Positions 11,301-52,200 of a DNA stretch of 64,000 nt are shown piece after piece. How positions within the stretch are numbered: the stretch's first letter is position 1; every line of letters begins with the position of its first letter. Location of the stretch: NCBI GenBank assembly GCA_964234715.1, contig OZ174277.1, one strand, 5' to 3'. This DNA comes from Podarcis melisellensis (lineage: Eukaryota). The notes beneath the pieces were generated by a model. That model was not told the DNA's origin, did not search any database, and was given only the letters and a program-made list of their open reading frames with translations. A program made the position numbers and the translations under genes.

Positions 11301-14300
11301 TCTACACATCCCTAAATGGATTGGGACCAGAATATCTGAAGGATCACTGTTTTCCATGTGATCCTCCCTCCTATGCATTCAGCATTGCGAGTCCTCTGTG
11401 TCATGCTGAGATCTTTGTATTTTGTAGAGCTTTCAGTATGGTCCAGTGTCTTTTATCCAGTGATACAAGCTTTCAGAGAAAATTAGAAATGGAATTGTTT
11501 CTGGAAAATTTTCACGTGCACCATGTTTTTTCCTTGATGCTTCAGAGAGTGATCTTAATTTTCATGTTTATTTTTCTTGTATGTGAGAAACAAAGCTAAA
11601 AACTTGGAAACTGCCTAATAATGGATCTGCAGTTGACACCCGTTCATTGTTACTAATGAATTTACGTAATTTAAATTTTTCTGCAGAAAAATAAAGCACT
11701 AAAGTTTCTGCCCATAGCTGAATGAGGAATCAAAGCCTGTTGATGAGCAGCGTTATTTGCAATCCTTGTGTCGTGCTTTGAAATCACTTATTCTTCTCCC
11801 CCCACCCTCCAACAAGAGACAACCTTTGACAGGCGGGGTAGGAGAGCCCACCTGTCAATCACCTCTCCTCATTATGACATCAGATGATTGACAGGTGTGT
11901 TATCCTACCCATCAGCTAAACATAGGCCATGGGGAGAGGGCTGATATCTGATCCGACAGAGCAAAATTCTCCCCCACTCCTGTTGTAGAGCATAACTTCA
12001 GGTTAATAGCAGCATTCCTTTCTAATTTGACTCTCTCTTATTTACAGCTGTCTCCAATCTAGATGAAGAGAGCAGATGGACAGTCCATTACACTGCACCC
12101 TGGCATCAACAAGAGAATGTGTTTCTACCCACCTCAAGGCCACCCTGTGTAGAGGATCTGCACCGCCAAGCCAAGCTGAACCTGAAGTCGGTACTAAGAG
12201 GTAGGAAGCTGACAATAATAACACACCATATCATTACATATTTTTTTTCTTTAGCAGTAAAACTATGTGCCTGCTTGCATCTGCCTGCTTTCACAGCCCT
12301 GTGACCTCTTGTACTTTTATCAAGGAACTAAACAAGTCAATAGGGAAGAAAATATCACACCAGTATTTCAGATGATTATACTCTTCTTGCTGTAATGTGG
12401 TCTCCATAAAACTTACTTATGCAACGTGCAGCTCTAGTTGGTTTCAGCCAGGCACAATAATATCATCACAAGTTCCAACTGTAGCTGAAGAGGAGGCTGG
12501 GAAAGAAAGTCTGAAGAGCCATCCTAGAAATGAGATTGAACCCATCCTGCGGATTACAAGTTTCAGGACACTCTCTGATATATGGAACATGTGGAATCAA
12601 ACAAAGCAGTTTAAACATTTGACATTGGAATATTCTCATTTTAGAGTTCAGGTGTAAAGTGCTGAACAAATATATTAGGTCAGTAAATATATATTTGTCA
12701 GAGTGCATACTGCTTCTGTCCTTTCTTCTCAAAAGTGTCTGAAATATATTAGTAAAAATAACTCAAGCTAGGTTAATCCAATAACTCATAAAAATTGGCA
12801 GAGAAGATAGCCACACCATAATAAAGCATCAGTGTAACAATATATATGTTTGTAACTATATTTAACTTTCCATCAGTAACTATTGCATTAGCTTAGGAAC
12901 CAGGTCCTATATTTGTTTTTAATTGTAATAATGCATTTGATACATATATAAAAGAACCAGTTCCTATATTTTAAAGGTACAGAGTACATACTTGGCAACT
13001 TGATATGCGAAAATATTGTGTGAGGAAAAGGAAACAAAAGATTGTTGGGCTCTTATGAAAGCTACTGTGATTCAAAATTAAGAATTCAGCAGGAAAAATC
13101 CAGGCATTTACAACTGTAATACAGGGGATTTTACAATGCAATCCTATGCATGTTTACTTGGAAGCAAATCCCACTATATTCAGTGGGGCTGACTCTGGGT
13201 AAGTATACAATGGATTGTAGCCTCTTATTTTGTTCAAACTTTATTTACTCTACAGAAAGTTTACTTTTTAACCACTCACAATTAGCTATTATTTTTCTAA
13301 GTTTGCAAATCAGTAGCTAAGAAGATAAAATAACATGTTAACAGAATTAGAGTTGGGGGAAATGAGGCTTGGTGTGGAAAAATATATACCTGTCTAGGTG
13401 TGTATCTAGGTAGCATAAGAGTCAGTGGATTGTAGCCTGTGAACAAAAACATACACAAACATTTAATTTAATTCTCTCTTGTTACTGTTTGTACATTTTT
13501 GTTCTCATTTGTTCTCAGAAAACACTGTAGGAAGGTGTAGAGGTACAGGCTATAAAGGACATGTTTAATAGCAAGAGATATGTTCAGTCTGCTTCAAGAA
13601 TTGAAGTTGAGCCACTCCCTGGCAGATTGTTTTGGCAGAGATCTATATTATCTGTAATATAAATCTCTTTGTACTGACATGATTTAGAAAAATGCACTGC
13701 CAGAATTGGGGGATAAGAGTTTCAACACAGCCTGAAGAGTCCCACAGCTTCAGGAGATGTAAATTGGTTGGTAGTACTATTGAGAACATGTCACTGAGGC
13801 CACAGAACAGCAAGGATATGGAAAGAAACTAATTATGAAAAGAATTATGAACTCACTGTTCATTCTCCATAGAATTTTGCTCCAGTTATATCTAGCTGCA
13901 CCAAAGCAAGTCATGAGTGTTGGGTTTCACAGTCCCTGGACTTTAATCTAGAGTGAACTAATTCAGCTTGCATCCCACTTACTCAGGAACAAAAAATATG
14001 TTAAAAGTATGATTGCATTTAACCTGATTTGGGTTTTTTTATTTTAAATCATACGTTTTTGGGTGATATGGAGGTATGTACAATTGGGCCACATAGAGGG
14101 GGAGAGGTTGCCAATGACAGCTTCCCTTTGAGGCAAGATGGCTAATCAATAACCATAGAAACAATGTAAAATACAGTGGTACCTCGGGTTATATACGCTT
14201 CAGGTGACATATGCTTCAGGTTACAGACTCAGCTAACCCAGAAAAAGTGCTTCAGGTTAAGAACTTTGCTTCAGGATGAGAACAGAAATCATGCTCTGAT

Positions 14301-25200: not shown

Positions 25201-28200
25201 GCAGCAGTATAAATGTAGGGTTCCAGTCAGCCTAAACAAATGTGGAATTTGGAGCAGAATTTAATATTCAAAGAATGTCAGCATGCATTTTTATATGTAA
25301 CACGTTGTTCATTCAGCTGCAAAGGTGGGTTTGAAAGTGTGTGCCTGGTGGAAACTCTGAAGCCAGAGTTAGATTTGAAGATGTTGTCAGGGAGATAAAA
25401 TACATTCATTCATCCTCAGGGCTGGAAAAAAGACAGGATTTATTAAAATAGCAAAACATAACCATAGAATCATAGATCTGTAGAGTTGGAAGGGCCCATG
25501 AAGTCATCTATTCCAACATCCTGCACTGTGGAAATCCTTTGCCCAACATGAGGCTCAAACCCACAACCTTGAGATACACAGTTTCCTGTTCTACCAATGT
25601 AAGCTATCCCAGCAGTTAGTTGATTGATGGGATTTACTTGGCCAAAAGTCCTTTTCTCTTCTTGAAGCAGAATTATGGTCACATTTTTTCTTTTTGGCAA
25701 AGAATATAAGGCTGGGTTAGCTGGTTGTGTGTTTTAGTCTCACACTACTTTGTGCCAGTTCTCTTGGGAACATTGTCACTTTTTTAGCTGAATGTGTCCC
25801 AAACATTGGTGGGTGGACGAAGTTGTATACAAATGAATAAATTTGACACTGGCACAATTTCACCCCTGTGCTTTAGTCTGCATATGTTGGTTTGTTGAGG
25901 GCCATTTTCCACCAGGGGCCACATACCTAGGTGGAGACACAGCTGAAGATAGGAACATAAGGAACTGCCTTTCATGGAGTCAGACAATGTAGCTCAGTGT
26001 TTTCTGAATGGCAATGGTTCACCAAGGTTTCAGATTAGGGATATTCCCAGCTCTACCTGGAGATACATATCATGAATTGATTTTTAGGACCTATGAATTT
26101 GGGAACTTGAGCTATGACCCATTCTGAAAATGGATGGATTGAAAATGGAAAGCAGGATATAGAATACCCTACGAGATAACTCAAATTAGAATTCCCAACT
26201 TCTATGCAGATTTACTCAGAAGGAAGCTCACTGGGTGTGAATGGGTTAATCTCAAATAAGCATACAGATGCAGGGAACAGATGAATACAACTACTGTTCT
26301 GGAAAGCAAGCAAAACTAATTCCTTTCTGACTTAGGCTTCTGGCATGAGCTTGCATCCAGTGAGTTTGTTTCAAGACAGTGGGAGTTGGGAATGGAACTT
26401 CTTTCCCCAAACCATACAATCAGAAAGAAAGTTTTAAAATTTGAATATAATATTGCTCCTTTGAAAGGAGGAGAAAATACTTTAAAAGGCCAGGAGTAGT
26501 GCAGCCATAGGAGGTTTTAGGGGTTGCATGAATTGAATTTGGGTACCACATGTTGCCTGTAAGCTGCCTACCTTGGTATCTAGCAACCAAAACACTAATG
26601 TTTATTTTTTATTTTTCTCTCTCCATGATGTACAGAATGTGACAAGCTGCGAAGGGATGGCTATCGAAGTTCTCAATACTATTCTCAGGGCCCAACTTTC
26701 TCATCTTCTTCCAGTGCAATCTGCGGAAGTCACCACGATGACTATGAAGAAATTGAACAAAAGGTGAGGTACCAAGCACCCTAGGAAATAATGTAATACA
26801 ATGCACATATAATCAAAAATTAAATCAACATAAAACACAATAGAACTCTGCAAAATATTTAGAAAATAAAAAACACCACCTATAGTGTGTTTCAACTCAA
26901 ATAAGAAAATTGCAATGCAAACATCTCTGGCAGGCAGAAGTACAGATTTTGAAACCGGTTATATTAGTATTTGCTGCTTTCATGAGCAAATAGAAAATAA
27001 AGCCATTATCCCTTTGTGAGCAGTACCTTTGTTTTTTTGTTTTTTAAAGTGTTCAGAGTTCACCTTACATTTTATTTCAGGCATTTTGTTTCAAGCAAGC
27101 TTGATGTGTTCAGAGTGGACTTAGTGCAATTAGGTTCTCTGGAAGGAAATAAACATAGCACTATGCAGATGTTTTGTGGGTGCAAGCATTGCAGCTTGCC
27201 AGATGGACCGTTCCCCACTCTCTCTCCTTGCCCCATGCGTTATTCTGGGGGTTCTCCTGCCCCTGCACCAATTTCAGGGACCTGAGAGGGAGGAAAACCA
27301 GAGTGTGCAGGCGGAAGTCCTTGTGTGAGCTTCCCCTGACAGAACTCATTAGTTGAATCCTTCCCTCTGTTCTAATTGTGCATTTGTTTCTTCATTGCGA
27401 TTTCTGTATCGTATCCACTTGAGTAATACTTGCCCCTTGTGCAGGAATCTGTTATGTGCACTGTGTTTCATAGCTATCAACTCCTTATCCACCATCTTCT
27501 TTCCTTTCTCAGGATCAGCTATGAACTCATAGCATATGTATGTGCTCAACCACTCAACCACTGGCCCTGTTCTCATACATGTGTGTACAATATATAATAA
27601 TACTTACCTACCTTAAAGGGTTGTTGCAAAGATACTGAAATCCTTGAACAGTGAAGACAGCACTGTTTGGATGGGAAGTTGTTGTTGTTTGCACCCTTCT
27701 AGCTCATTTAATCTTGAAGTTAAAGGCTGCATAACGATACTTGAAAAATAAACAAACACAGATGTGATGCATTTTCCAATAGCCTCCTCACTCCACTCCT
27801 TCCCTGTTGGTCTTCAACCATGAGTGTGTGCACTTCAATTTCCCACCTGGAGAGGGTGGGATTCATGCATGAAGATCTTGAGATGCTATTATTTAGTTTC
27901 AAGTAAATATATTTAGAGCTGTGTTGGTTTAAATCTCAAAAAAAAATCTTAGCTAGTTTTTGGACTATGATTTTTTAAATATTTATAACAGAAAATAGAG
28001 TGCAATGTCCTCAGCAAGTCAGTATTTCTTAATAGTCCTGCACTTTTGTTCCTGTGTAGGAGAAATTATTATATATGTGTTATTTGCAAAATCAGTAAAA
28101 TATTAAAACTGACTCAATAAGTGGCATTATGAGGAGATTATAGAACTGCTGAGGGCTAATTTATAGTGAAATACTACCTAATATTATAAGCAAAATGGTA

Positions 28201-31200
28201 TTTTCCTTGAAAACTACCTTCCCATAAAAATTATCTTAGAGTGATATTCCACTTTTCTTTGTTTTGATATGGTATGTACTGGTGGATATCAGTCCTCAGT
28301 GAAAGACACAGTGAGATGTACTGTTGGGTGAGGCTGTTGTTATGGTCCCTCTAGAACTAATATTGTGGGGAAGGTGGGAAGCCTGAAGCTGAGGGAGGTT
28401 TTGTAGAGAAGTAACATGGTATCTGAGAATATTTGTTCAAAAAACAGCAGTAATATATTTAGGAGAAGTGTTAGCCTCAAGGATGGGAGAGGGGAGGTTC
28501 CTTCCTTCTCTGTGGCTCCTTCCTGAGATGGTCCCAGAAGGGGGTCTTTCATGGTTCTTGTTGCCCCAGAACTTCAAAGGAAGGGGAAAATGAGCATTTG
28601 ATGTAAAAGTCTAATGTGCAGTCCCTTTGCAAGTCCGGATCAGGATGCAGATGTTATGAAATACATCTATTTGGGACCCTAGAAATTTTATGGAAATATG
28701 ATCGACTTCATGCATATTCCTGTAATTTGGTTCATACTGCCCACAGATACTTCTATGGGGACAGTTTGGGGTGGAGCCATCTTTTTAATGTGATAAATGG
28801 CCCTAATTCAAGGCAGCATTTCTGACATCCTGTACTGAAGCATATTTCCCTATTGTGAGTCCACTGAATTGGCTGGTTCTTGTTTTTGTTTTATTATTAT
28901 TATTATTTAAAAAACCCTTTGATTAAAACACGACAAACTAGTATGATATTTTCTCTCTCTCTCTTCATCACTTAAGCATGTATTCCTTGCATGGAAAATT
29001 GATGTCTTCAGATAGCAACTTCTCTTTGCTTTCTGAAATTATGTTTATCTTGTTGCTATGTTTATTGTGTCTGTTGTGTCTTTTTATGTGTGTTTTTCAT
29101 TCTCTTTTCTTTGCCACTCATTCACTTTCTTTTTTCTCTCACTCAACAGTCTAGTCTGTTAGACTGCCTCCCTCAGTCTTGCCTTAGTGCCTGCTGTTGT
29201 TTGATTCCATGGAAGATCAAGGTATCTGGCTCCAAAATGGGATCATCCAGCTGTTATGTATATATACAGCTTGATGTTATTGTGACGCTAGAATATTCTC
29301 AAATCTTATTTTTAAATTTTAACCTATTGTTGGTTTCACTTTTTCAAGATAAATCTTGTACTAACATTGTGTGATTCTATCCTTATCTCAGTAGTTGTCA
29401 ATCTAGAACCCTCAGTTTGTATATTTAACGGACTAACTCCTTTTTTGCTGCTCATACTTTGTTAATGTTCTCTGTTCTCTGTGAATAGTTACTAACTTTA
29501 CAAACCGTTATAAATGTTTTTGTAATTTGGATTGTTGTGCCGTTTTACAATAATTTATTCCAAATCAGACAAACTATATATTGATATATATATGAAATGG
29601 AAAACAAAACTTCTTAGCATTGAATCCGAGAGTGAATGTGAGTGTCTGTTAGGTTCCTCTTAACTCACACGTTTTACGACAGGGGTGGCTACCTTCCAGT
29701 TCAAGTGCCTAATCCAGCCCCCCCCCCATTTTTGTCTGCCCCTCAAGACTCCATAAACTTTTGCAATGGTTTCAAGTTTTTTAAAAAGTAAACACAATAT
29801 TTGGATGAATGGCATCCAGGGTCTAGATGGGGATGCAAGTTATCCCCTCTCTGATAATGAGATTTATCATTTGATGAGTGGGAAGAGGATGATAATTCCT
29901 GTTTACTGGCTTCAGCAACCAAAATGCCACTAATCTCATTTCTGAACATTCCTTTTCCAATCCTTACTATATGCTTTCCTGTACTGAAAACAAATAATGT
30001 TTTTGTTCCACTGTGTTCTATTCAGAGATCATGTAGAAATCCAGAAATCTCAGATGACAATCTTAAAAGATCAGTTTACTGAAATGAAACCTGAAACTTT
30101 TAATAACTGCTATTATATTTATTGAACAATCCAACCATCTCAGTATAACACTGGGAAAAATAATATTTAGTAATAGAATTAAGCATGAAAACCAAACTGT
30201 GCTACTCTTTGTAATACATAAGAATAATATTAATTTCGCTTCCTATTCATTCTCATTCCTTTTCTTCTAACACTAATCTTTGGACTGAGTTTTAAACCAC
30301 CACAAATCTGCATACTGTTTGGTTTCTTTATTATAGGCTTTGTTGGAGCAATGAATCCAGGTTGCTGCTTATTCTGAAGAGTTGTTATTTCCTTGTGCCT
30401 GCCTTTGAAATAGTCATTTAAGAACATATTGTTACACACCACCCCAGTCTTCACAGCAGTGCAAGATTCCAGGGGTTACAGCGGAGACTGTGGTGTCTTT
30501 ATGATATATGGTTCATTTACAACCTGAACCTACAAGGGAGGGACTCCCAGGATTACACTCCAAAGCTGGTCCTGTTCCTCCCATGGGTGCAACGTTGGAT
30601 TCAAACTTCCCACCCCATTCTGCTCTGACCCACATTTTCCAGCTTTGAAACTGCTTTCTAAATGCAACTATTTTCCCTTCAGCTTACATAACCCCCCACT
30701 GCAGTTCTGAAACTTCCTCCTCGCCACTCTGGCATTGTCTGTTGCTAACTACCCAGAGCCCAGAGTAAGTCTCCATGACTTTCTTGATGAGTCATCATTC
30801 TGTTTTTGCTTGCTTAATGACTAGGCCATTCACAGGCTCACCTGGCTATTTTGATATAAATCCAAGCACCCAAAAACTCTTGATACCCAAAGACATATAA
30901 CAATATTCAAAGAGTGGATTCTTCATTCCCAGCTGTTTGTTGGGGAATACAGCCAGAACACAGGAATTCTCTGGGGCAAAACTAGGGACTGTGGCAGGGT
31001 GGGGGGGTCGCATCGTGGGATGCATTCATTGCAAGAAATTAGTACAGTCGTACCTTGGTTCTTGAGCACCTTGGTACTCGTACGTTTTGGCTCCCGAACG
31101 CAAAAACCCGGAAGTAAGTGTTCCGGTTTTCGAACACTTTTTGGAAGTCGAACGTCCGACGCGGCTTCCGCCTGAGTGCTGAAAGCTCCTGCAGCCAATA

Positions 31201-34200
31201 ATATTAATTTCACTTCCTATTCATTCTCATTCCATTTCTTCTAACACTAATCTTTGGACTGATCTTTCAAACACTTTCGGAAGGTGAAAGGACTTCCGGA
31301 ACGGATTATGTTCGAGAACCAAGGCACAACTATATTGCACATGCACACCTTTCAGACATGCATAGGTCTTAGAAATTCCAGAGCTGATGTTTTCAAGCTG
31401 TTGACTGGTAGATAGTGTCTAAGCCCTACCTCAGCTGCCCCAACCATAAACATCTATAATTTTATAATTCTGTAATTAATTTCACCCTTGGCTGAGCTAC
31501 TTTTGAAAGGTTGTTTTCCATCAGGGCTGAGAATAGGGCCAGGTGTGAGTAGTTTCCCCTCACCAAGCGATCCCAGGACCTGGAGGGTTTTTTAATGCAT
31601 TAAACCAGGCTTTGCCAACCTGGTGCCCTCCAAATGTTTTGGCCTTGGCACAAGAAATGGAAACAATTGCTGCTTGGGTTGTATAAAAATATTTGTATGC
31701 ACTAAAACCTGACCAACATTTGGACAGTGTTTTGTCAGAGTAGCTGATCTGACTATTTAAATCAGGCACAGGTGAACTCGGCCCTCCAGATGTTTTTAGG
31801 ACTACAACTTCCATCATCCCAGACCACTGGTCCTGTTAGCTAGGGATGATGGGAGTTGAAGTCCCAAAACATCTGGAGGGCCAAGTTTGCCTATGCCTGA
31901 TTTAAATGGTCTATTATTTATTGGCCATCGGATCAGCTGATTTATTTTCCCATGTGTCGAAATTGTTAATTTTGTTTGTTTTGTATAACAAGGATTCAGA
32001 TATAAATTTCCCTGTCTGCCTATGTGTGTGATTTGTTTTGCCTCATGCCTCATAATTGCTTTTAAAATATGCTTTATTTGCAGTTTCCTTGAAAAAGAAG
32101 GAAAGTTATATAGTATCCATTTATGTCTCTGTCTCTTGTCATGTTCGAAGAGCCCCTGGTGACTGGCTAATGGCAGCTGGGTTTCCAAATACAATACACT
32201 GGGTCAACATAACATGACAGTTATTCATTTTGACAATGTCAACCAACCAGATAAAAAGTAGGTTACTGGGGCTTATCACACAGCACCATGCTTGAAGTAT
32301 TACTCCCTTGGCACCTGAGCCTAGAGTAAGCTTTTTTTCATGTGTAATAGTAAGATAAACAAAAGCTACACACTAATGAACCATTGCATATCATTTTAGT
32401 TTGCATTTCTATCTCTGTGACTCAGACCTTTTAAAAACTGATTTGGTGGAGTCACACTTGCAAATTTCCCCTTTGTACAAAGGAAGAAGATGGCACAGAA
32501 GGTTTCTTATCCTAATACTAAGGTCAGGGATACCAAAAGAGGGGCCATTTTCCCTAAGATTTGGTCATTGCATTGAAGAAGCTCTTCTGACATTTCAGTT
32601 GTAAATGTTTTACAAGATTTGTAAATCCATTCTTTCATGTTTGGGATTTTTAAAAATCCCATCAGAGTAGCCCTAGAGTTTGGACTAGAAGCACTGTATT
32701 TTATAGCACTGTTAAAATTCCTACTGAGAATAGTAGAGTTCTTGGTATACTATTAACAGACCAGTATTAATTCCTATGTTTTATACGTAAATTTAGTATA
32801 TGGTTCCGCATAATGTCCCTTTTTTCCAATGAGAAAAACAGTTAAGTACAAGTTTAATAATTAGATTTTTTGCATGTTTACTCAAAAGTATTCTGTATTC
32901 AGTAGTACTTACTCCCAGGTAAGTGTCCATAGGATTGCCTGTCACATTGAATTCAATTCCTTAGCATGTGCTTTATTGATTTTTTTTTAAAAAAAACTTA
33001 TTGGGTGTTGGGTGAAATCGGTTCAGTATTTGTAATTACTGCTAAAGAGGATGTACAAACCTTTACTCATGTACAAATTGGAACAAGGTCTGTCTAATTC
33101 ATATTTTGCTAGAAGTAGCCAAGGCAAAAGCATCATAACTATTTTGAATGCTTTAATTCATATTTGAAAGATAAATAAGTAAGATAAATATATTTGCACT
33201 GAATTTACAGTGTACTTTTTTTTAATAGTGTTCGACCCCTTCTCCTGAGGAGGAGAAGCTTATTAGCATCAAGAGACCCAAAACACCAGTTTCAAATGAA
33301 TTCTCTGATATCAACACTCAAACAAATTGGACCAAATCACTTCCATTGCCAACCCCGGAGGAGAAAATGCGACAGCAGGCTCAAGCAGTCCAAACTGATG
33401 TTATACCTATTAACGTAACTGGTAGGCTTTTAATTTTGTTTCTGTGTGGTGAGAAAGAGCAAGGGCTCTCAACTGGTTATTGGTTTTTATTTTGTCTGAA
33501 AATTATTGGTTTTTATTTTGTCTGAAAATACGTTTTGTAAACCCTTGTTCAAAATTTATTTGAAATACTGATGAAACTTAAAATGAGAGGCTGATTAGAT
33601 TGAAAGTACTGGTTAAATTACTACTACACTTTTCAAGAGCAGGGTTCTTTGCAGGAATTATGAAGAATATCGGTAAGAGCACACATTCAGCCTTAGATCT
33701 TAAGTTTAGTGGGTCCCCAACAAAAGGATTCTTGTGGCATAGTCAAATATATACTGAGGTTTAAAAAGAGCACAAAACCCAATATGTTTTCTACAATAAC
33801 TTTCTCTTAAGATTTTAGGATCTCTCTGCTTTTCAGTCTATGAATAATATTGAGAAACTTGCCCAAGCCAACAGATTTACATGCTCATCTGTGGCAAAAA
33901 ATATTGTTGTATGGAATATTCTTCAGGACCTTTGAGATGAAACCTATGTTAACCTCTTTCTCGGTCACAACGAAATGCTCTGTGTTAGCTTCAAAGATGA
34001 AATGTACATATTAGAAATGGTTTGCTGCTATATTAAGCTTAAAAAGTTTCAGAAAGCCTTAGATAAGATCCACTTACAGTATGTGAATATCCGCCTCTTT
34101 TGTACAATGACTGTACTTCAGTTATCCACTGGAGGAGGAAAGTGAAATGCAGAACTGTACTCCTGTTCCATTAACAAAGAAGATTTGTCTTTCTCCTGCA

Positions 34201-37269: not shown

Positions 37270-40200
37270 TCATATACTGCTTACCTGCCAAAATTACTTT
37301 AAAGACTAATATAGCCAGGGTGCAGTTCTGTGACACTGAAGTCACAGAGAATTTATGTTCAATAAATGTTACTGGCATTTGGCATGGCTCTTTGGTACCA
37401 ACCAAAAAGAGACAGTGAGACCTCTGTCAGGGTTTCACAGTATGATGGAGCTGTTTCCATCTGCATCAGTCTCTCTCTGTCTCTTTCTCCCCCCCCCCCC
37501 CAATATAATGTTGTATTTAAAAATAGTAAATTTTCAGAGGTAACAGACATTAAATTTTGGCTAACCTGAAAGTCAGAACATTGCCTAGACTTAGCCATGT
37601 TTGTTATTTAATATTTTTCTCCCACTGTTCCAAATGTGCCCAAGGCTGTTCACAACACTGCTAACGTAAGTTCACTGCAAAATACAGCAGTGCTTACTTC
37701 AAATTTCAGTTCAAATTATTTGTTGATTTTAAAAATACCTAAGACATTCAGATATTATAAAACTTCATCGTAGTCATATAATAAATACCGTATTTTTCGC
37801 CCCATAGGACGCACCAAGTTTTTTTGGGGGGAAATAAAGAAAAAAAAATTATTTCCCCCACCAGGCGCTTGTGGGGCCGGCAGCGGGGAGAAGCACTCAT
37901 CTCCCCGCCGCCCGCCTGCAGGCGCTGCGCCTCCCAGCTGTCCCCAGAGCCTGCGAGGCAGGCAGCGGGGAGAAGCGCTCTTTTCCCCGCCGCCCGCCTG
38001 CTGATCAGGTCCGGGGACAGCGGGAGGACGCGCTGCGCCTCCCAGCTGTCCCCGGAGCTTGCGGGGCAGGCAGCGGGGAGAAGAGCTCTTCTCCCTGCCG
38101 CCCGCCTGCAGATCAGGTCCGGGGACAGCGGGAGCACGCGTCTCCCCACCGTCAGCCTCCAAACCACAGCGGGATGGCGGCGTTCCGCCTCCCTGCTGTC
38201 CCCCGACCTTGTGGGGCTGGCGCTGCGGCTCTCCTGAAGCCTGGAGAGCGAGAGGGGTCAGTGCGCACCGACCCCTCTCGCTCTCCAGGCTTCAGTGAAA
38301 GCCTGCATTCGCCCCCTAGGACGCACACACATTTCCCCTTCATTTTTGGAGGGGAAAAAGTGCGTCCTATAGGGCGAAAAATACAGTAATCTGCAATCAG
38401 TTCCTCTGAAGTTTCAAATGCAGGGGAAAGTAGTCAGATTTCTTATGACTGTCAGTATAAAAAGTTTTGCATGCAGAGGTATCATCTTACTTTACTTATG
38501 CTTGGAGTCTGGAAGTTTCAAAAAACTAAAACACACATATAAGGGCCTATGTTAGGTGTTGAACAAAAGAGGCAGTCTAGGGATGTTCTTAGTGTCTGTC
38601 CACCCTGCTGCTTAACAGCAGCAAGAAACCAAACTTTTTGTGTTGTCATCCCAGTTCTGCCAATAGAGGTTCCTCAGGTATATTCTGTTTTAACTTTTGA
38701 AACACCTCCTGAAAACTTTTCCATGCTACTGAGCTAATGCAGTCAATTAAGAAAATATATTTAAATATTAAATGATTTGTCATTTTCCAAATTAACAGCT
38801 TACAACAGTGGAAAAAAGAGAACCACAGTCCCTCAGAAAATATCTTTGTAATAGTTCTGATGTTTTTATGAATAGTGATATACAATTTTTAAGTAAATAA
38901 ATAAGCAATGAGGCCTCAAACCTCTGACATCATTCCAGGAACCCACTTATCCAAACTGACCTCCACACCTTACATCCACTTCCATTAGCTTCATATCTGC
39001 CTCATGTCCATTAATTTAAATTAAACCTCCAATTAAGTATATTTAGGATCGTCGCTGAAGTCATTAGCCATGCCATGCCATGCCATGCCATGCCATAAGA
39101 AAATGAATAAATACTTATTCAGTACATTTCTCAAAAACAAGAGCATAAATTCTCTCTCCCCCATTCCTCAAAGTTCATAAGAAGGTAAGCTGGGACATAA
39201 TGTAACTATAAATGTCCAATGTTGACATTAATGGCTCACTGATATGTTTAGATTAAATGAAGATTTGGTCTGATGAGACAATTGTATTTGATAGGAGCAT
39301 GTAATCCCTTCCATTTTAAAGCCTTAAAGTGACAGTATGCTGTATCTTTTCCTTCTATGTATATCCACTCTGTATGACTGAGCTAACATCATATATTAAT
39401 GCCTTTTCTTCATTTCTATAATAAGCAAGTGGAAGAAAGTGCATGATGTCAGCGTGCTTGAAAGTAATGGTGCTTTGCTTGTTCTACTGTACATCAGGGG
39501 AGAATTTTGACCGCCAAGCCAGCATACGGAGGTCTCTAATTTACACAGATACTGTGGTAAGGCGGCCGAAGAAAGTGAAAAGGAGAAAGACTATTACAGG
39601 AATCCCTGACAACATCCAAAGAGAGCTAGGTATGGCTCATCAGAACTGTATTCCATTACAATTAATAATTATCTTGCTTACTGTGACTAAACTCATAACA
39701 TTTACCCCACGCTCATGAAGTCAATACAGTCTGATAGCCTATTAAAAGTTAAAATGAATGTATGCCTGACCACCAGGAAAGAATAAATAGTGTATGCTTA
39801 AACCGATCATTTTGCCCACCTGGAAATTAAAGTTCTGTCTTTTTAAACAAACAAACACACAAACAAACAAACAAACAAACAAACAAACAAACTGAATTTA
39901 CTGAATGCCATGCAAAGCTGCAATTTTCTGAAATCATGTACTGGGACAGTAAAAATCTATAAGAATTTTAGGGTTGTTTTTATTCTCTTGGTCTTAAAGA
40001 TATATCTTACAATTACCGGTAAATTTGAGCACGTCAGTCTCACATTTCCTTCATTCTTCACTGAAGACTGGATTTTACTAGGAGGAGTAATGCTGTCTAA
40101 AATTGGTTCCAGAATCTCATTAAAAACTTCCCCACTTACCATCTGATCATAAGTCTTATCAGTCAAATGGCTGAAACATTTGTGAAATGCTATAGGAGAG

Positions 40201-43200: not shown

Positions 43201-46200
43201 TTAAACCATAGTTAAGATTTAGCGTATAACATGCTGGTGCACAGGACAAAAATCTTGGTCAATTTGCACCTTCCCCATTCCTAATGTTGCTTTGCTACTG
43301 GGAGCTAAGCCATGGTTTGGCTCATGGTTTGTTTGGGAAAAACAAACCACTAGTCCCCTTTTGGACATAACACTTAGATTTACATGAAACCAGAAAACTT
43401 CAAGCAACCCACATTTCAAAAATGTGGAGTATTAAAAAAAACCCCACACAGGAAGTGTGCCTGTCAGTAGTTAATTGGCATTATAAAATCAGCAAATCAG
43501 AAGGCAGGGACAGCCATAAAAATTCAAATATGGGCGAGTGTAGACTGCTTTGAATGGAGGATTCACAGCTAAATAATGCTCAAATGTGGACAAACCCTTT
43601 AACTATGGTCGAATGATGTGCGAGCACTTGCCACTGGGGAAGGGGCAGCCAGAAGACAGGAAGTTTGAAAATAATTTTGTTAATTTAATATTAGATTTGC
43701 AAGTCCTCCTCCTGTCACTGGTCAACTTGAAAGAATGAGAGTTGGATTTTCTGTGAGATGACTCTCTTGCAATTCTGTCTGTACCTTGCCTTGCGCTTAG
43801 TCTCCCTCCACCTGCATTGCAGACAGAAGCCATTGTCTAATTAGGCTGTAGACTCTGCTTCAGTAGGTGAGCAACACTATTCTCCCTGCCTTTTGTTCTT
43901 CCTCAAAGAACAATGTAGATGTTGCTATGCTAAGTATTAATACATAGATGGAATAGTTCTTAGAAACTTGGGCAGGCCTTTAGAATTTCTTCATTTAATG
44001 TGTTTAAATGTATTTCAATTTGTTCCTTTAAAGAGGTCAGTGGTTTTAAAAAGCAATTGTTAGCACTTTATTTTTCTCCTGTGGTATAGTGCAAGGTCCC
44101 AAAAATAAACATTTCATGATTCAAGTAGATAATAATATAGAAAAATAATTTGTGTGGAATTGCTTGAATTTCCTGGAATCCCATGGTGCTTTTGAATGGA
44201 AGGTGCAGCAGTCAAGACATAGTTTGCAAAGAACAAGGACTGAGACACGCTTTGCTTGTTCTTTATTTTCTTCATTTTTCACACTGGGGATAGGGTACTA
44301 TATTATATATATGTAACATAAATAAGCTCCTGTACGTTGTGACTTAAATTATGGTCTGCTGAGTGCAACAATAGCTGCAGCTGCTATTATTTAAAGTGAA
44401 GTGTGCAGGCAGCCTAGTAGGATAGTATTGATTGTTCCCAGTTGGCCTTTAGCCTGTTGGTTAGGTAATAACAGCTATTCTTGTCTATCAGGGGTTTTGT
44501 TTGTTTTTTATCTGAGTGACGTGACTGGAGAGTAGTCCTAGTTTGAATGTAAACAGACCCAGGTTCTTATTTATATTTGAAACAATTAAGCATATTTGAA
44601 ACATCCAAGGAAACAACTTTTTGATACATGTTTTGTTAATGAACACAGGAGTTTAAATGTGAAATCTTGATGTGTATAATAACTGTTTTATTTTAACTTC
44701 CAACAGTTGGCACTGGTAAAAACGACTTCCGTGGCCATTCATTATGCATCCCTGACCACTATTCCACGCTAGGAAGGCTTGATAGTTATCACTCTTCCAT
44801 GCAGCAGTCTGACACCAAGGACTCCGGCTGTCAGACAGAGGAAGTCAAAGTGGTGCCACCTTCAGTGAGGCGAATACGTGCCCAGAAAGGTCAAGGAATT
44901 GCAGCCCAGATGTCACAGTTGTCCAGTTCTTCTGGAAACATGTCTGTGATGAGTGATTCCGCTGGGGTTGTGTTTGCCTCCCGCCTAAACAATGACCTGG
45001 GTTTTCATAGTCTACCTCGGTCTGGGGCAAGGGTGTCCCTACAGTTCCTGGAACGTAGACATAGCCTGTCTAAGTCAACAGAAGACGGAGCACTGTCACA
45101 CCAGATAAGCAAACTGCAAGTGGATGATAGCATAGACCACATGAGGAACAACAGTAGGACAGGTATGCTTCAAAGGCCAAAGTCCCAAGAGGTCAAGGGC
45201 TCTGAGAGTGACCAAACAGAAAGTCTAGCATGCATGGTCTCTCCACATAGTATGTATTCAACCAGCATTATACCAAATGCAACCCTATCATCCTCTTCAG
45301 AGGTTATTGTGATTCACACCACACAGAGTGCGGGCGCAATGGATAGTAAAATCACCAACCCTCCTTCATATACAAAACCTAGAGACAATCTTGTTGTCAA
45401 CAGCATGGTAGGCACAAAAGATCAGCAGCATTCCTCTAGTGGGACCTGGAGTGAGACCAGTTCAACACATCACTCGCGTTCCTCAGACACTGCTGTTTCA
45501 TCGAATGCTGCAATGGTGCTCAGTCTTGGAGATTCAGGAGTTTCTCTCAGCGGTGCAGGAGCTGTGGAAAATGCCCCTCAAAGTATGACCTACAGCAGTA
45601 GGAATAACCTCAGTTTTCCAACCCACTCTCAGGACAGTGACAGTAGGAGTGAATCAAATTACTCTGTTGACAAAACACAGAGCCAGGTCCAGAACAGCAC
45701 AGAGCACTGTGGTTTGAAGTGCTCTGGAAAGGAAGACGTGTTGTTACACAAACTAAACTGTGCCACTCCAGGCTGCTCCACGCCTGTGAGCAACCTGAGT
45801 ACCAGCAGCCTTGAAAGAGTCTCTGCCAAAGAAGACTCAAGCTCTTTATATTCTGTGGACCATGATGGCTATTACACTTCCATGCACATGGACTCGGGAC
45901 TCAAGTCTGGCAAAACTTGCAATAGCAATAACGGCTTTGGAAACCCCAGGCACAGTGTCATTAATGTGTTTGATGGCACTGAGAAGAAATCTCTGGGAGA
46001 CTTGTCGAATTACAGCGACAAATCCCTCTCACGAAGCATATCCTTTAAAAAGGCAAAGAAACCGCCTCTGCCGCCATCCCGAACAGACTCTCTTAGAAGG
46101 ATCCCCAAGAAGAAAACTCAGTCCAATGGGCAGGTATTGGATGACATGTTGATTGCTAGCCTCCAACACTCCCTACAGTTGAACCTCAAGTGCAAAAATG

Positions 46201-49200
46201 GCAGCTCACCATCTCAAAGCCCCTGCAGTGATTATGATGACCCTTGGGTGCTACGCTCTCGTAGTCAGAGCTCGGTGAGCGCCAGTAGCAGCATGATGTC
46301 TGGAACAGGCCTGAACATGTACTCCATCTGTACTGTCACACCCTCCCAGAGCGAGACGAGCAGCATCAGGTCAGAGTATGCTGACCAGTGGGGCTACTAC
46401 AGCGATTGTCCTGGGATGCCGGAGGATCAGCTGAAATCCCCAGTAGTTCATTCGGCTAATGCTGGACCCAGGCTAAATGATTATAACGTCAGCCGCCTTA
46501 ACGATGGGTCAAGGGCTTCTACACCACAGGTGCCCAGCGGGTTGGCCAAACCAAAGACCACTTCTCCAGAAAAGCCACATAGGGTTACATCACCATCTAG
46601 TGGGTATTCTAGCCAATCCAACACACCCACAGCAGTTACACCAGTGCCTGTCATTCTGAAATCTATGTCAACAGGAAACGGGAAACCCAAGATGAAACCT
46701 AAAGTGCCTGAAAGAAAGTCATCCCTTCTGTCTTCAGTTTCAGTGTCTTCCTCCTCCACATCCCTTTCTTCTAATACATCTGCTGAAGGGAGTGGGAGTG
46801 TGAAGAAATCTGACTCTGGCCCAAGCTTCCCTCTGGTTTTGTCTCCAGACTCTTCTGAGTACCTTCTTCCACCACCACCACCTCCCTCATCAGATGTTAT
46901 GGATCTGCCGCCTCCTCCTGGATCTCCCAACTTCCCACCGCCTCCACCAGAAGCGGTTATAAACATATCGTTTTCTCAAAGTATCCCATGGTTTAATTAC
47001 CTACCGCAAGACCCTTCGTTGGATCATTTCTCTCCCTTGTCACCGCCTGTTCCATCTCCTCCCCTTCCACCTCCTGTCCCTTCTTCAGTTCCTCCACCAG
47101 CGCCCCCCTTGGACCCTAAACTCACAAAAGGTGCATATAAAAATGCACCATGTTCTTTCAAGAAATATAATCAGGAAGGTTCTTCTCACAGTACAATAAA
47201 GAGAGCATCCTTGAAAAAGGAGGATCCCGCCAGGCCTTCAATGCCTCTAGTAACCACCCAAGCACTGCAAATGGTACAGCTGAGGTCCGTGAAGAAAACT
47301 GTGGTGTCAGAGGTTGAACAGCCAGTTGAATCTGCTTCTGACATAAATTCTCAGGAAAAATCAACTGATGTGCTTTCAGGACAGCTGCCTATAAAACCAG
47401 GTGTATCAGTAGGACACTGCGACAGCCTGGAAGAAGGTGAAGTGAAACCCCATGGTGCTTTTGACAATACCTTTGTTTACAGTCCTAATCAGAGATCTTA
47501 TCCCGGACTCTGTGGTAACTATGAACTTTCGAGTGGTACAATGCCTGGAAATGCAGGCAGTCTAGCGAATTCCTTTGCCAGTGATTTGCCACCAGCCAGT
47601 GTTGAAGAAGCAGCACAGGGTTTTTGCTCTGATCTTGCAAGCTCATCTCTTGAGGGGCAGCCAGGGTGTCTCAACAAGCCTCAGGGTGTATCGCCAAACA
47701 AGAAGCCGCCACCTGTTTCAAAGAAACCCAAACTGTTCCTGATTGTGCCACCCCCACAACCCGATGTTACAGCAGAAAAAATAGCTGGAGTGGGTGAAAC
47801 AGTTAGAATCGCTCCAGGGGATGCTGTCATTGCACAGTACAGCCAGGCTGAGGATTATCCTACAGATGGACTCTGCTCCTATGAAATGGACTCTGGCAGC
47901 CTGGTTCCAGAAGGAGGAGCTGCAGGTTCCACCTCCTGTGAGACACTGGAAGTCGGCGTTTCTGCGCTGCAGCCCAAGCAGGAGGAGCAGCCTTGCTTGT
48001 GCGAACGAAGCAGTTCCAACAGAATTGGAGACAGTGTCTCTAGAGGAGACAGGCATGCATCTCAAGGGGATGAAAGTGGTAAGTCTGTTTTCTATTTTCA
48101 TCCAGTATATTTAGTGACTAGACCTATTTGGGAGTGGGATAGGGAGGGCTGCAGCATTGGCATCAGTGTAACACTCTCGGTGCAAATGCATGCAGATCCT
48201 AAGGGAAATAATAGAACTCGGGCTAATGGTGTGTAAAGAATCCTTCTTTATTTAAGGGGAACAATTGTCAAGGGGGATTTCTCAACCAAATCTCTGTTGT
48301 GTTGATTTTTAAACTGCGACAATAATGATGGCCATGGGGTGGGGATGAGGGAATCCAGAAATGTCAGTGTTATGTTCCTTGTAAGCAAATAAATAGCTTT
48401 TCACAGAATGTAGTTACTCAAAATAATTTTGTTGTTGCCATCAGTAAAAAGGCAGAAGCATGGCTGTGTTGTGCATTTTTAGGGAAATTTACAGTCTTTA
48501 TTGCCCTGTTGGCTATTTAACTCTTAACTCTTCAGATATTGCGAGTTTATAATCCCGCATAATTTTCTTACTTATTGCATTTTAGCTGAGGGGTTTGAAT
48601 CAGATGCAGCAAACAGCTTTTTACTGCAAAGCCCTAGTTATGGAGAAGACAGTGAGGTGGTGGCAGTGCCAACCAGACCAAGGACTACTGAGGATCTTTT
48701 TGCAGCCATTCACAGGTATTGTTTAATAGCCTTATTTGTGTTGCTTTATCCATTATCCCTTAAGAGTTTTAAATATATCTTACATAATATGTAATGCTAA
48801 TGACTATTATTTTATTTTTCAAAGAAATTCACTTTAGTTTCTGGTAATACGTAGTTAAAATAGATTATTCATATATGCACCTTTCATTGCTTTGCAATCA
48901 ACTAATTCTGAAACTAAACTTTGCTGGCAGCAAAATCAAGTTTGGTAAAATTGTCAGTCTCTGGCCCTTCTGTGAATGTCAAGTGATCCCTTGTTTGTAT
49001 TGTACTGTTTCTCTCAAATCTGCTTGATTTAACATATACTATTGCTTTCTTTGTGTATCTTTTTGTTTTCATTTCCTCTACCCTCCATTCTTTTCCCCCC
49101 TCTTCTCTGCTGATTATATGGTGCAGTTTGGGACAGAGGCTCAACTCTAATGCTTCATGGCAAGCTTGGCTTAAACTGGCAAGTAAACATGATCTATCCG

Positions 49201-52200
49201 TCATATGGCAAAACATATGACAGTAGCTGGATTATAGATTGCCATAATCCAGTTGAAGATGAGCTATTTCTGTGACACACTGATCTGTCGTTTCGAATGT
49301 GCAATACAGACTAACCCCAATCATACTCTCCTGATTAAAGGAAGGAAGGAAGTTCAATGGATGAACACATTTCACAAGGCTAAACAAATGCAAATGAATC
49401 TCTACAAATAATTATGGTTCTTTAGACGATATCTTTGATTACAGATTTTCAGAATGCAACCCATTTTTAAAAATACTTTAAGATACCTTTAGCTAGAAGG
49501 GGCAGGCAGGAAATGCCCTAAAAAGAAAGTGACATATCTTGACTTGGAATATCTAATGTGTGTTACTGGTGCCACCTTGTGGTGATTTTTCTCTCTCTAC
49601 GAATTGGAACATCTTTGGGGAGTGTAATTGAAAGTGGCACAAGTATGTTCTCATTATGTTATGTGAGTATAGGTTGGGAATGCTCTGTGTTGGGAACTTT
49701 GGGTCATGTTTATATATTGTACAGTTTATATATTGTAGTGTTAAATATTGCAGGGTAGAAAAGTTTTGCTTCTAGGATGATATCCTTTCATGGCAAACAA
49801 TTGTGCATTTCAGAGTAACGTGTTTCCCACTACCCTACATATTTCCCATTACTAAACATATATAGACCAAGACTGAAGACACCACTCAACTAGTTCCAAA
49901 AGGCACTGAAAGGAAGTGAATTGCAATATGGCACAGGAGTTTGCTATATGTAGAGTAAAGTAACAATTCCCACCACACATGGCAAGTCCATGGGTATACC
50001 TAAATAACTCTTGGATTCAAGAGAAACATTCATCTTTGTGTGGGAAAAGAGCAGTGTGTATATGTGAGACACAGATTGCATTTGTGAGTAGGGGAAGAGT
50101 GTTTACATTCTTCTCTCACCTTCCTCCCCAGTCTTCCTTGTAAGAGAACAAATAAGTCCTGAGTATGTTGACTACAAAACTGGCAAACATCCTCTGGAAA
50201 CACCTGAGATGTGATTGCACAGCCACTTTCAAATTAGATACTGAGTGAGGATACATCCCATGGATACCGACATACATTAACTGATAACACCTGGTGTTTA
50301 CTTTTCATGCTGTTGTGTGTCACAGTGCAAACTTCAGCTGTTAATGTCGTATGAAACTTCCAATTATGACTGGAGAGAATCATAGAATAAAATAACGTGG
50401 GCATAATTTTATAATGTAGTTATGTCCCATAGTTTTCAATTGTCTTTAAGTACATCTAATTTTCTATGGATGGTGTTCTTTGTTTTTCGCAAGGGGCTTG
50501 GTCTGTATTGCACAATTATACAAACTGTGTATTTTGTGTGAAATGTACATAAGAATAAGTCCTGAAAACATGTTTTTACTAGTTACATAGTACTATATAT
50601 CTTTCATCTGCTGACCCCAAAATTTTCAAATTTATCTGCTAGTCCACATTCGTATAGCTCTCATTTTTCCTGCATTTTAGGAACATAGGAAGCCGCTTCA
50701 CACAGAGTCAGATATTTGTTGTCTACTCTGGCAGTGGCTCTCCAGGATTCCAGTAAGGAGTCCTTCTCAGGCCTAGCTGGAGATGCCAAGATTTGCACCT
50801 GGAACCTTCTGCATGCAAAGCCAATGCTCTACCACTGAGCTGTGGTCCTTTTGTGATCTTAAACCCACAAGTTGATCTCATTCTCAGTGAACTGAAGTAA
50901 ACATGGAGAGGGTGGTCCTTCCCTTCCCCTAATTTTTCTTGAAATCCCAGCTTTGGCTTGGCCATTTTCAGTTTGAAAATGATTTTATCGGTACCCCAGC
51001 CAGGGGTAATAAACATAGCATCCCCCATCCAATATGGCCAATGATAAGGGATAATGGGAATTGGATTCCAATATCTGGAGGGCATTTTGGCTACTGCTAT
51101 GCTAGACTTTACTGGAAACTCATTTTCAGTATAGGCACGCATGTCTGTGTGTGTCATCAAATAGTTTAGGCATGTTTATTTTAACCCAGGAAAGTGTTAC
51201 CTACTTTCCAGTATTTGTTTGTATGCAGTATCTCTGCAACCCCCCTTTTTTAAAAAAATACTGCATAGTCAGTTATATATATAGCATTTAAATAAATATA
51301 GAACAGCACAGCCCATTTATGTTCTCCCTCTGGATAGGCCAAGGGGCACACAATAGTCCAAGACTCTTGGGTTGAGGTTTCTTCCTAGAGACTGACAAGT
51401 GAACATATTGCTCAGTCTTTTCTTCTGAACTGTGAATCTACATAAGGCTTTCTTCAAAAGTGATATTATTTTCTTATCGGTACCATTTTTAAATGTGTTG
51501 GGAGTGTTTGGGCGGCATTAATATATGATTGGTGTTAACTTGAAAGGAATACTACATGTCCTTTACCATCTTTGTTAATCACTTACCAACTCCTTGTTTT
51601 ATCCTATACACTTTCTGATTTCCCCTGTATACAAATTAATTTGTTGTTTTTAAGGGATGTCCTTTCCCTTCTTTGCGGGTCAATGCAACTGCTTTTAGAT
51701 GAAGCTTCATAGTATGTCCTATGTGCTAATTACTTTTGATACAGTAAAATGCTTCTTATGTTCCTAGCTCCCCACAGAGCATGTGGATTTCATTTAGGCT
51801 TCATTAATTTCACGCCCTTTGGCAATTTCATTTGGAACACCTTGACAAGTGTAGCTAGAATATATTAATTTGGAGGACGCTACTATATTGGAAAGCTGTT
51901 TTAATTAAGAAAATACAATTTAGCAAGATTCAAATATTTGCTTTGCAAAATATTTATGAGAAATTAATATTGTAACTTGCAAGTAAATTGGATTAATTCA
52001 GTTCTGTACTGGAGAATACAGTTCAGAACAAGACTCCTGTTATCAGAATGTCACCATTCCTGTTGCCAGTCTCTTCCTACTCATTTCAGCTTATATTCAT
52101 CTGCTTGCTTGTTACAATATTCATATGTGAAATAGGAAAAGCATTGAAGTGAGATGCTAATACTGATTTTATGTTTTTCTTCTACATTAAAATCATAGAT

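Follow-up and report, generated by a model that had tools for sequence, protein, structure and literature searches.

The NHSL1 Locus and Its Optional Exon

The window analysed here, a stretch of 64,000 nucleotides (nt) from the lizard Podarcis melisellensis (contig OZ174277.1) without any N, carries the gene NHSL1 of the NHS protein family. Within the third intron of this gene, on the plus strand at 29150..29221, lies a 72-nt segment of 24 stop-free codons, SSLLDCLPQSCLSACCCLIPWKIK, with five cysteines and a CCC cluster at positions 15-17. The segment is very probably a genuine, translated optional exon, a cassette of the NHS-family "exon 3a" type. The exon is already known to databases and is new here just as an unannotated lacertid copy. 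Taken alone, the window sequence is weak evidence for an exon; the strength of the case comes from conservation elsewhere.

By sequence similarity, the window gene is the NHSL1 orthologue. Its exons, all on the plus strand, were queried one by one, and their best matches are lacertid NHSL1 proteins at 96-98.6% identity, the large exon being 98.6% identical to Podarcis muralis and P. raffonei. The Pfam NHS profile (PF15273) scores 838.6 bits on the large exon, 108.5 on exon 4 and 39.2 on exon 3, and it matches a 1145-codon open frame at 44799-48233. Exon 3 (26636..26763; ..CDKLRRDGY...YEEIEQK; Pfam NHS 53-90) and exon 4 (33229..33422; CSTPSPEEEK...PINVT; Pfam NHS 117-180) were placed by tblastn and Pfam, and exon 4 also by RNA depth. 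The donor of exon 3 reads GAA CAA AAG/gtgagg, with 26763 as the last exonic base, and the acceptor of exon 4 reads tag/TGT TCG ACC, with 33229 as the first. With phase 0 at either junction, the 72 nt preserve the reading frame; an earlier note on this DNA had claimed this exact phase match to intron 3.

The acceptor side of the cassette (29090..29149) consists of a pyrimidine-rich tract and the acceptor tcaacag, with ...ctcactcaacag directly 5' of 29150, and sequence comparison indicates that it is kept from lizard to bird. Pyrimidines make up 48 of the 60 upstream nt, so the tract of more than 50 nt described in the earlier note is pyrimidine-rich but not unbroken. The donor (29222..29229) reads gtatctgg and is weak by a rough matrix, and its gta[tc]ct form is kept in Phrynosoma, Lerista and Pandion. 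The other elements listed in that note, namely 72 stop-free nt, a caacag acceptor, a gtatct donor, five cysteines and CCC, can all be read in the window. Intron 3 is 6465 nt long and, in the size range of 30-300 nt, contains 217 AG..GT candidates that are open and in phase; none of the other candidates equals the cassette jointly in pyrimidine tract and donor score.

The remaining exons have approximate ends. Exon 2 (~12047..12199; VSNLDEESRW...) was located by tblastn of Varanus and Zootoca NHSL1, and the large exon (~44706..48065) by tblastn, Pfam and lacertid matches. Two further exons (~48585..48716 and ~52194..52847) were found by tblastn. A second optional exon of about 44 residues (~39494..39628; GENFDRQ...KKVKRRK...) was recognized by tblastn and isoform comparison; it is basic, and its presence varies among the isoforms of many species.

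Annotated Isoforms and Conservation in Sauropsids

The insert was queried with natural database isoforms that already bear the cassette. A word search yielded 105 NHSL1 proteins with both flanking anchors, 22 of which carry a 24-residue insert where EQK meets CS or CP. The insert of Varanus komodoensis NHSL1 X3 is identical to that of the window (24/24) and sits at the same junction, and those of Anolis sagrei X3 and Anolis carolinensis X2 are identical at 23 of the 24 residues. Turtle inserts read SSLLDCIS[QR]SC[IV]S[AT]CCSLVPWSLK, and bird inserts read SSLLDCISQSCISACCNLVPWSKK with variants, 17/24 identical to the window. Six residues are constant in every sauropsid variant (Cys6, Cys11, Cys15, Cys16, Trp21, and Lys24). 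Isoforms with and without the insert occur within one species, e.g., in Haliaeetus, Chelonoidis, Caretta, and Gopherus, and B10K bird models named "NHSL1 protein, partial" also bear it. A query with the bird cassette region gave 140 cassette-bearing clusters, of which the 120 listed are all bird NHSL1; this word search was filled by bird clusters and did not reach the paralogues.

The insert is represented by match columns in the Pfam NHS profile. A cassette-bearing segment of 168 residues is colinear with profile positions 50-216, and the 109 residues of a lacertid isoform without the cassette are spread over positions 50-182. Queried alone, the 24 residues gave no Pfam match even at E 10, and a short-fragment word search found no spliced cassette-bearing fragment, just skip forms and intron read-throughs. 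Short bird "proteins" from open reading frames are genomic read-throughs of the cassette and its intron flanks (..FCLAQQ/SSLLDC..WSKK/VPCP..) and provide no splicing evidence. The description of the exon as hidden, made in the earlier note, is true just locally, for the 16 lacertid isoforms inspected, because the exon is annotated in many other NHSL1 models (Varanus, Anolis, turtles, more than 100 bird clusters, and teleosts) and is represented in Pfam.

Conservation extends to the DNA of introns from Podarcis lilfordi, Phrynosoma, Lerista, and Pandion, where the peptide sits in the same intron, ~2.4-3 kilobases (kb) after exon 3. The peptide matches that of the window at 24/24 residues in both Phrynosoma and P. 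lilfordi and at 22/24 in the skink Lerista, and Pandion has the bird form. Nucleotide identity to the window is 72/72 in P. lilfordi, 71/72 in Phrynosoma, 70/72 in Lerista, and 59/72 in Pandion. The acceptor caacag and the donor gta[tc]ct are kept in the window and in all four of these loci, which bears out the conservation in other reptiles and birds that the earlier note had proposed to look for. The gene models of Phrynosoma and P. lilfordi leave the cassette out although the DNA has it. Synonymous differences between the window and Phrynosoma affect 1 of 24 codons in the cassette, 11 of 42 in exon 3, and 9 of 64 in exon 4; over two squamate comparisons the counts are 1 and 0 of 24, 10-11 of 42, and 9-11 of 64, respectively. 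As judged from these alignments, the cassette and its splice sites are under strong purifying selection from lizards to birds.

An intronic block at 29244..29276, 23-55 nt past the donor, is likewise conserved between lizards and the bird and could fold into a hairpin of 10 base pairs (CAUC.AGCUGU / ACAGCU.GAUG). At one of the pairs, lizards have U-A, the skink U-G and the bird C-G, among four sequences. This candidate hairpin, proposed from conservation and pairing, may regulate inclusion of the cassette and is a lead, not a finding.

The Paralogue NHS, Fish, and the Age of the Exon

NHS and its fish relatives were reached by an exhaustive search with a natural bird segment. Human NHS has isoforms of 1630 and 1651 residues, the difference being the 21 residues of exon 3a (Sharma et al., 2008, PMC2571945; Brooks et al., 2010, PMC2876887). 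Whale shark and zebra shark NHS read ...QQIAT/FHSTRSSSPTECCQMTPWSKK/SVPS..., and an isoform shorter by 21 residues lacks exactly that stretch; poison frog NHS has an optional stretch, FNRTRPPSPTECCHLTPWSRK, likewise absent from another isoform. Alligator, rattlesnake and one teleost NHS contain ...TECCHMTPWS[RK]K, the alligator stretch ending ...TECCHMTPWSRK. The earlier note had described an optional NHS exon of about 21 residues ending ECCHMTPWSRK, and it was right: this is exon 3a (PMC2876887), with alligator NHS as an example. The NHS inserts end ECC[HQ][ML]TPWS[RK]K, the counterpart in the window being ..CCCLIPWKIK.

Exon 3a thus belongs to the paralogous gene and resembles the cassette in lying in the same intron, in being in frame and optional, in its length (21 vs 24 residues), and in the core CC-x3-PW-x2-K, which emerges from the alignment to the NHS exon that the earlier note had advised. 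By contrast, its first half is polar and proline-rich, whereas NHSL1 has SLLDC..QSC there. The literature searched assigns no function to NHS exon 3a.

Fish NHSL1 genes also contain the exon. Eel NHSL1 bears an NHSL1-type cassette, PSLLGCLTQSCLTVCCHYNPWDKK; in Osmerus the cassette is present in one NHSL1 model and absent from another, and Syngnathus nhsl1a isoforms differ by ..RSTFWDFLSQSCFSLCLEWS[VF]WRQK. An NHSL1 alignment from lizard to teleost has 12 invariant columns, 3 of them in the cassette (Cys11, Trp21, and Lys24). The core common to both paralogues is C(C)-x3-(P)W-x2-K, and one Cys (15/16), Trp21, and Lys24, and no more, are constant across them. Insert length is a multiple of 3 (63-75 nt), and the intron that separates the homologues of exons 3 and 4 is phase 0. 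In shark and frog NHS and in the NHSL1 of Syngnathus, Osmerus, birds, and turtles, the longer and shorter isoforms are distinguished by precisely this insert. The annotated NHSL1 isoforms of Varanus, Anolis, turtle, bird, eel, Osmerus, and Syngnathus represent the orthologous exon, whereas the copy of the window lizard is known from DNA alone. Because the optional exon and its core are common to both paralogues, gene models, rather than transcripts, support an optional exon at this junction that is older than the NHS/NHSL1 duplication. The ancient origin put forward in the earlier note accordingly finds backing in the homologous position, phase, length and C-terminal motif shared with exon 3a.

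On the mammalian side, an NHSL1 fragment of a primate (Pongo) and a mammal-like representative pass directly from ...TDQK to CS[LI]SSS, and the Pongo form (...TDQK to CSLSSS) is the direct union of ..DQK with CSLS.. that the earlier note had stated. A hypothetical protein of Saguinus oedipus has an unrelated insert of ~95 residues at the DQK/CS junction, which is probably an annotation artefact or a primate-specific exon. The NHSL1 intron of Pteropus alecto retains an open relic of 24 codons, ASLLHYIIQCCINFCNFLVPWSVR, at 86917-86988, 3 kb after exon 3. This relic is identical to the bird sequence at 49/72 nt, and its orthologous AG and GT are both lost (one mammalian intron). In the bat, an in-frame mini-exon of 39 nt, CCINFCNFLVPWS, might be bounded by the cag at 86941-86943 and the gt at 86983-86984, but this is pure speculation.

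According to a preprint (Jalal et al., 2025, 10.1101/2025.03.13.643034), "exon 3" and "exon 6" are skipped in some isoforms of human NHSL1. As in sauropsids, this amounts to a pair of internal exons that are optional and precede the large exon; in the numbering of that paper, however, "exon 3" need not be the exon at the cassette junction. The second optional exon of the window is probably the human "exon 5" (2021) or "exon 6" (2025).

A Possible S-Acylation Switch

Inclusion of the cassette would place 24 additional residues within an acidic, disordered part of the protein, past the N-terminal region. The insert would be hydrophobic and rich in cysteine, with Pro-Trp and basic residues at its end, and could act as a short linear module in which conserved cysteines beside hydrophobic and basic residues are S-acylated. 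The acylated isoform would then be tethered reversibly to the lamellipodial or junctional membrane, and splicing would decide whether the NHSL1 protein can be tethered.

The sequence pattern is that of S-acylated inserts, with cysteines flanked by hydrophobic and basic residues. AlphaFold, run on a 20-sequence alignment, gave a mean predicted local distance difference test (pLDDT) score of 54.9, a 4-residue helix within the insert, and acidic disordered flanks. The region being of low confidence and mostly unstructured in this model, the prediction fits a linear motif rather than a fold or domain. A strong amphipathic-helix argument was dropped, the helical hydrophobic moment being modest.

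A known counterpart is the STREX insert of BK channels (KCNMA1), in which an optional exon carries a palmitoylated CC pair next to basic residues (PMC2911306, PMC3256903). The two cases share an optional, cysteine-rich exon, and in STREX the S-acylated CC beside basic residues tethers a cytosolic region. However, the STREX sequence and protein are unrelated, the insert has 59 residues, and its acylation was shown by experiment, whereas the NHSL1 insert is a candidate by its sequence pattern. Both proteins of the family, NHS and NHSL1, function at the periphery of the cell and at the edge of lamellipodia (PMC2876887, PMC8478917).

From this analysis, S-acylation appears as the single most likely mode of action of the insert, at somewhat less than an even chance. 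The explanation as a whole, in which an ancient optional exon acts by S-acylation and provides a splice-controlled tether, is the best available and is put forward tentatively. A wider version is somewhat doubtful. It holds that a splice-controlled S-acylation site older than the NHS/NHSL1 duplication decides whether WAVE-like actin regulators of the NHS family are lipid-tethered to the membrane, that it has decayed in mammalian NHSL1 (the bat relic) and been kept as NHS exon 3a, and that the hairpin aids inclusion; some of NHS isoform biology, and possibly Nance-Horan pathology, would depend on it.

Counter-Evidence and Alternative Explanations

Several observations weigh against this explanation, some of them concerning use of the exon in lacertids and others acylation itself. 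RNA was available from four runs of unspecified tissue, the raw runs being sampled at ~12%; runs were searched with 29130-29241 and reads placed on 27450-33449. Two raw runs with the same species label have depths of 6.3 and 11.7 on exon 4 (expected strand), and of 0 and 0.57 in the cassette bin, the latter equal to ~1 read in a run with sparse intronic reads. At this sampling, the four runs contain no 29221^33229 joint and no cassette junction read; the junctions 26763^29150 and 29221^33229, which the earlier note had proposed to look for, are absent from this sample. In a related organism, a contig of 7175 nt covers exon 4, and its upstream loose end is the 3' end of exon 3; this is the skip form, with exon 3 joined to exon 4. 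The sole contigs over the cassette (151 and 166 nt, depth ~3) prove nothing, because they include 67 nt of upstream intron and are unspliced. Nor does any of the 16 inspected lacertid isoforms bear the cassette (Zootoca, Lacerta agilis, Podarcis muralis, P. raffonei, and P. lilfordi; 15 of 51 cluster members listed), all of them passing from EQK to CSTPSP. Lacertid inclusion is unproven, and in the sampled RNA it is rare at best. Since the cassette is skipped in most or all transcripts of these lizard samples, inclusion is expected to be restricted by tissue or stage.

Two side observations concern the same RNA. In runs X23 and X24, every read departs from the window at 33261 (T>C) and 33375 (G>A), which shows that the RNA came from animals other than the assembled individual or population. 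Segments 30450-30650 and 31050-32050 show RNA depth up to ~230 on both strands, with many loose ends and opposite-strand joints; this coverage is due to expressed interspersed repeats and is not NHSL1 signal.

The absence of junction reads, the dominance of the skip form and the lack of the cassette in lacertid models would all be accounted for if the lacertid segment were no longer spliced in, and survived as a relic or as a conserved non-coding element serving splicing, RNA structure or an enhancer, as the bat copy may. The bat relic is still recognizable without its splice sites, and synonymous sites of the cassette are nearly frozen, with 1 changed codon of 24, compared to 11/42 in exon 3 and 9/64 in exon 4. 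Near-frozen synonymous sites of this kind are often seen where an alternative exon is regulated. They suggest that the cassette is constrained at the RNA level as well as in its protein sequence, a point that counts against acylation in particular. However, AG, GT, frame and all 24 residues are intact across deep squamate splits, in lacertids, an iguanian, and Varanus, and the RNA set is as small as described above; loss of splicing in lacertids is quite improbable. That the segment is a meaningless open AG..GT stretch, a pseudo-exon arisen by chance, could be argued from the 217 open candidates in the intron and from the weak donor. This reading is refuted by the peptide and DNA conservation, which reaches from teleosts to lizards for the peptide, and by annotated isoforms with and without the exon in many species, and its probability is negligible.

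With respect to acylation, the peripheral localization of NHS has been attributed to exon 1 (PMC2876887), and no paper in the literature searched links NHSL1 with palmitoylation. The cysteines themselves vary: the CCC cluster is found in squamates only, some teleost nhsl1a copies have a single Cys at 15/16 and have lost Pro20, and NHS is without Cys6 and Cys11. Trp21 and Lys24 are as conserved as Cys, and would equally suit a docking motif. In that case the exon would be genuine and lipid-free, and the motif C-C-x3-P-W-x2-K, or a small hydrophobic helix, would bind a partner or NHSL1/NHS itself and alter the complexes formed. This is consistent with the NHS insert, in which the first half is polar and proline-rich and just the CC..PW..K core is kept, with the position of the insert in a disordered region typical of linear motifs, and with the role of NHSL1 as a multi-partner scaffold (PMC8478917, 10.1101/2025.03.13.643034). 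However, docking motifs of the cytosol seldom contain conserved cysteines, the insert has no known partner, and its 24 residues match no family or motif; docking without a lipid is unlikely, if still a serious contender. The cysteines of a genuine exon could also form a metal-binding or redox-sensing cluster (C-x4-C-x3-CC in NHSL1, CCH in NHS), as the four invariant cysteines of sauropsid NHSL1 and the Cys-Cys-His or Cys-Cys-Gln kept by NHS might suggest. Their spacing, however, matches no known zinc module, the one or two cysteines retained by NHS and some teleost copies are too few as ligands, and no fold is predicted; the chance of such a cluster is slim.

Significance for the NHS Family

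NHS and NHSL1 are scaffolds that control Arp2/3-driven protrusion, and loss of NHS causes a human syndrome. Isoform studies of these proteins have to date centred on alternative first exons. Lacertid NHSL1 models appear to omit an exon that is perfectly preserved in lacertid DNA, and in NHS as well as NHSL1 this small optional exon has retained its Cys-Cys..Pro-Trp..Lys core over a range that spans shark, teleosts, lizards, and birds. If it does act as a switch, by lipidation or by docking, it would offer a simple handle on isoform-specific localization.

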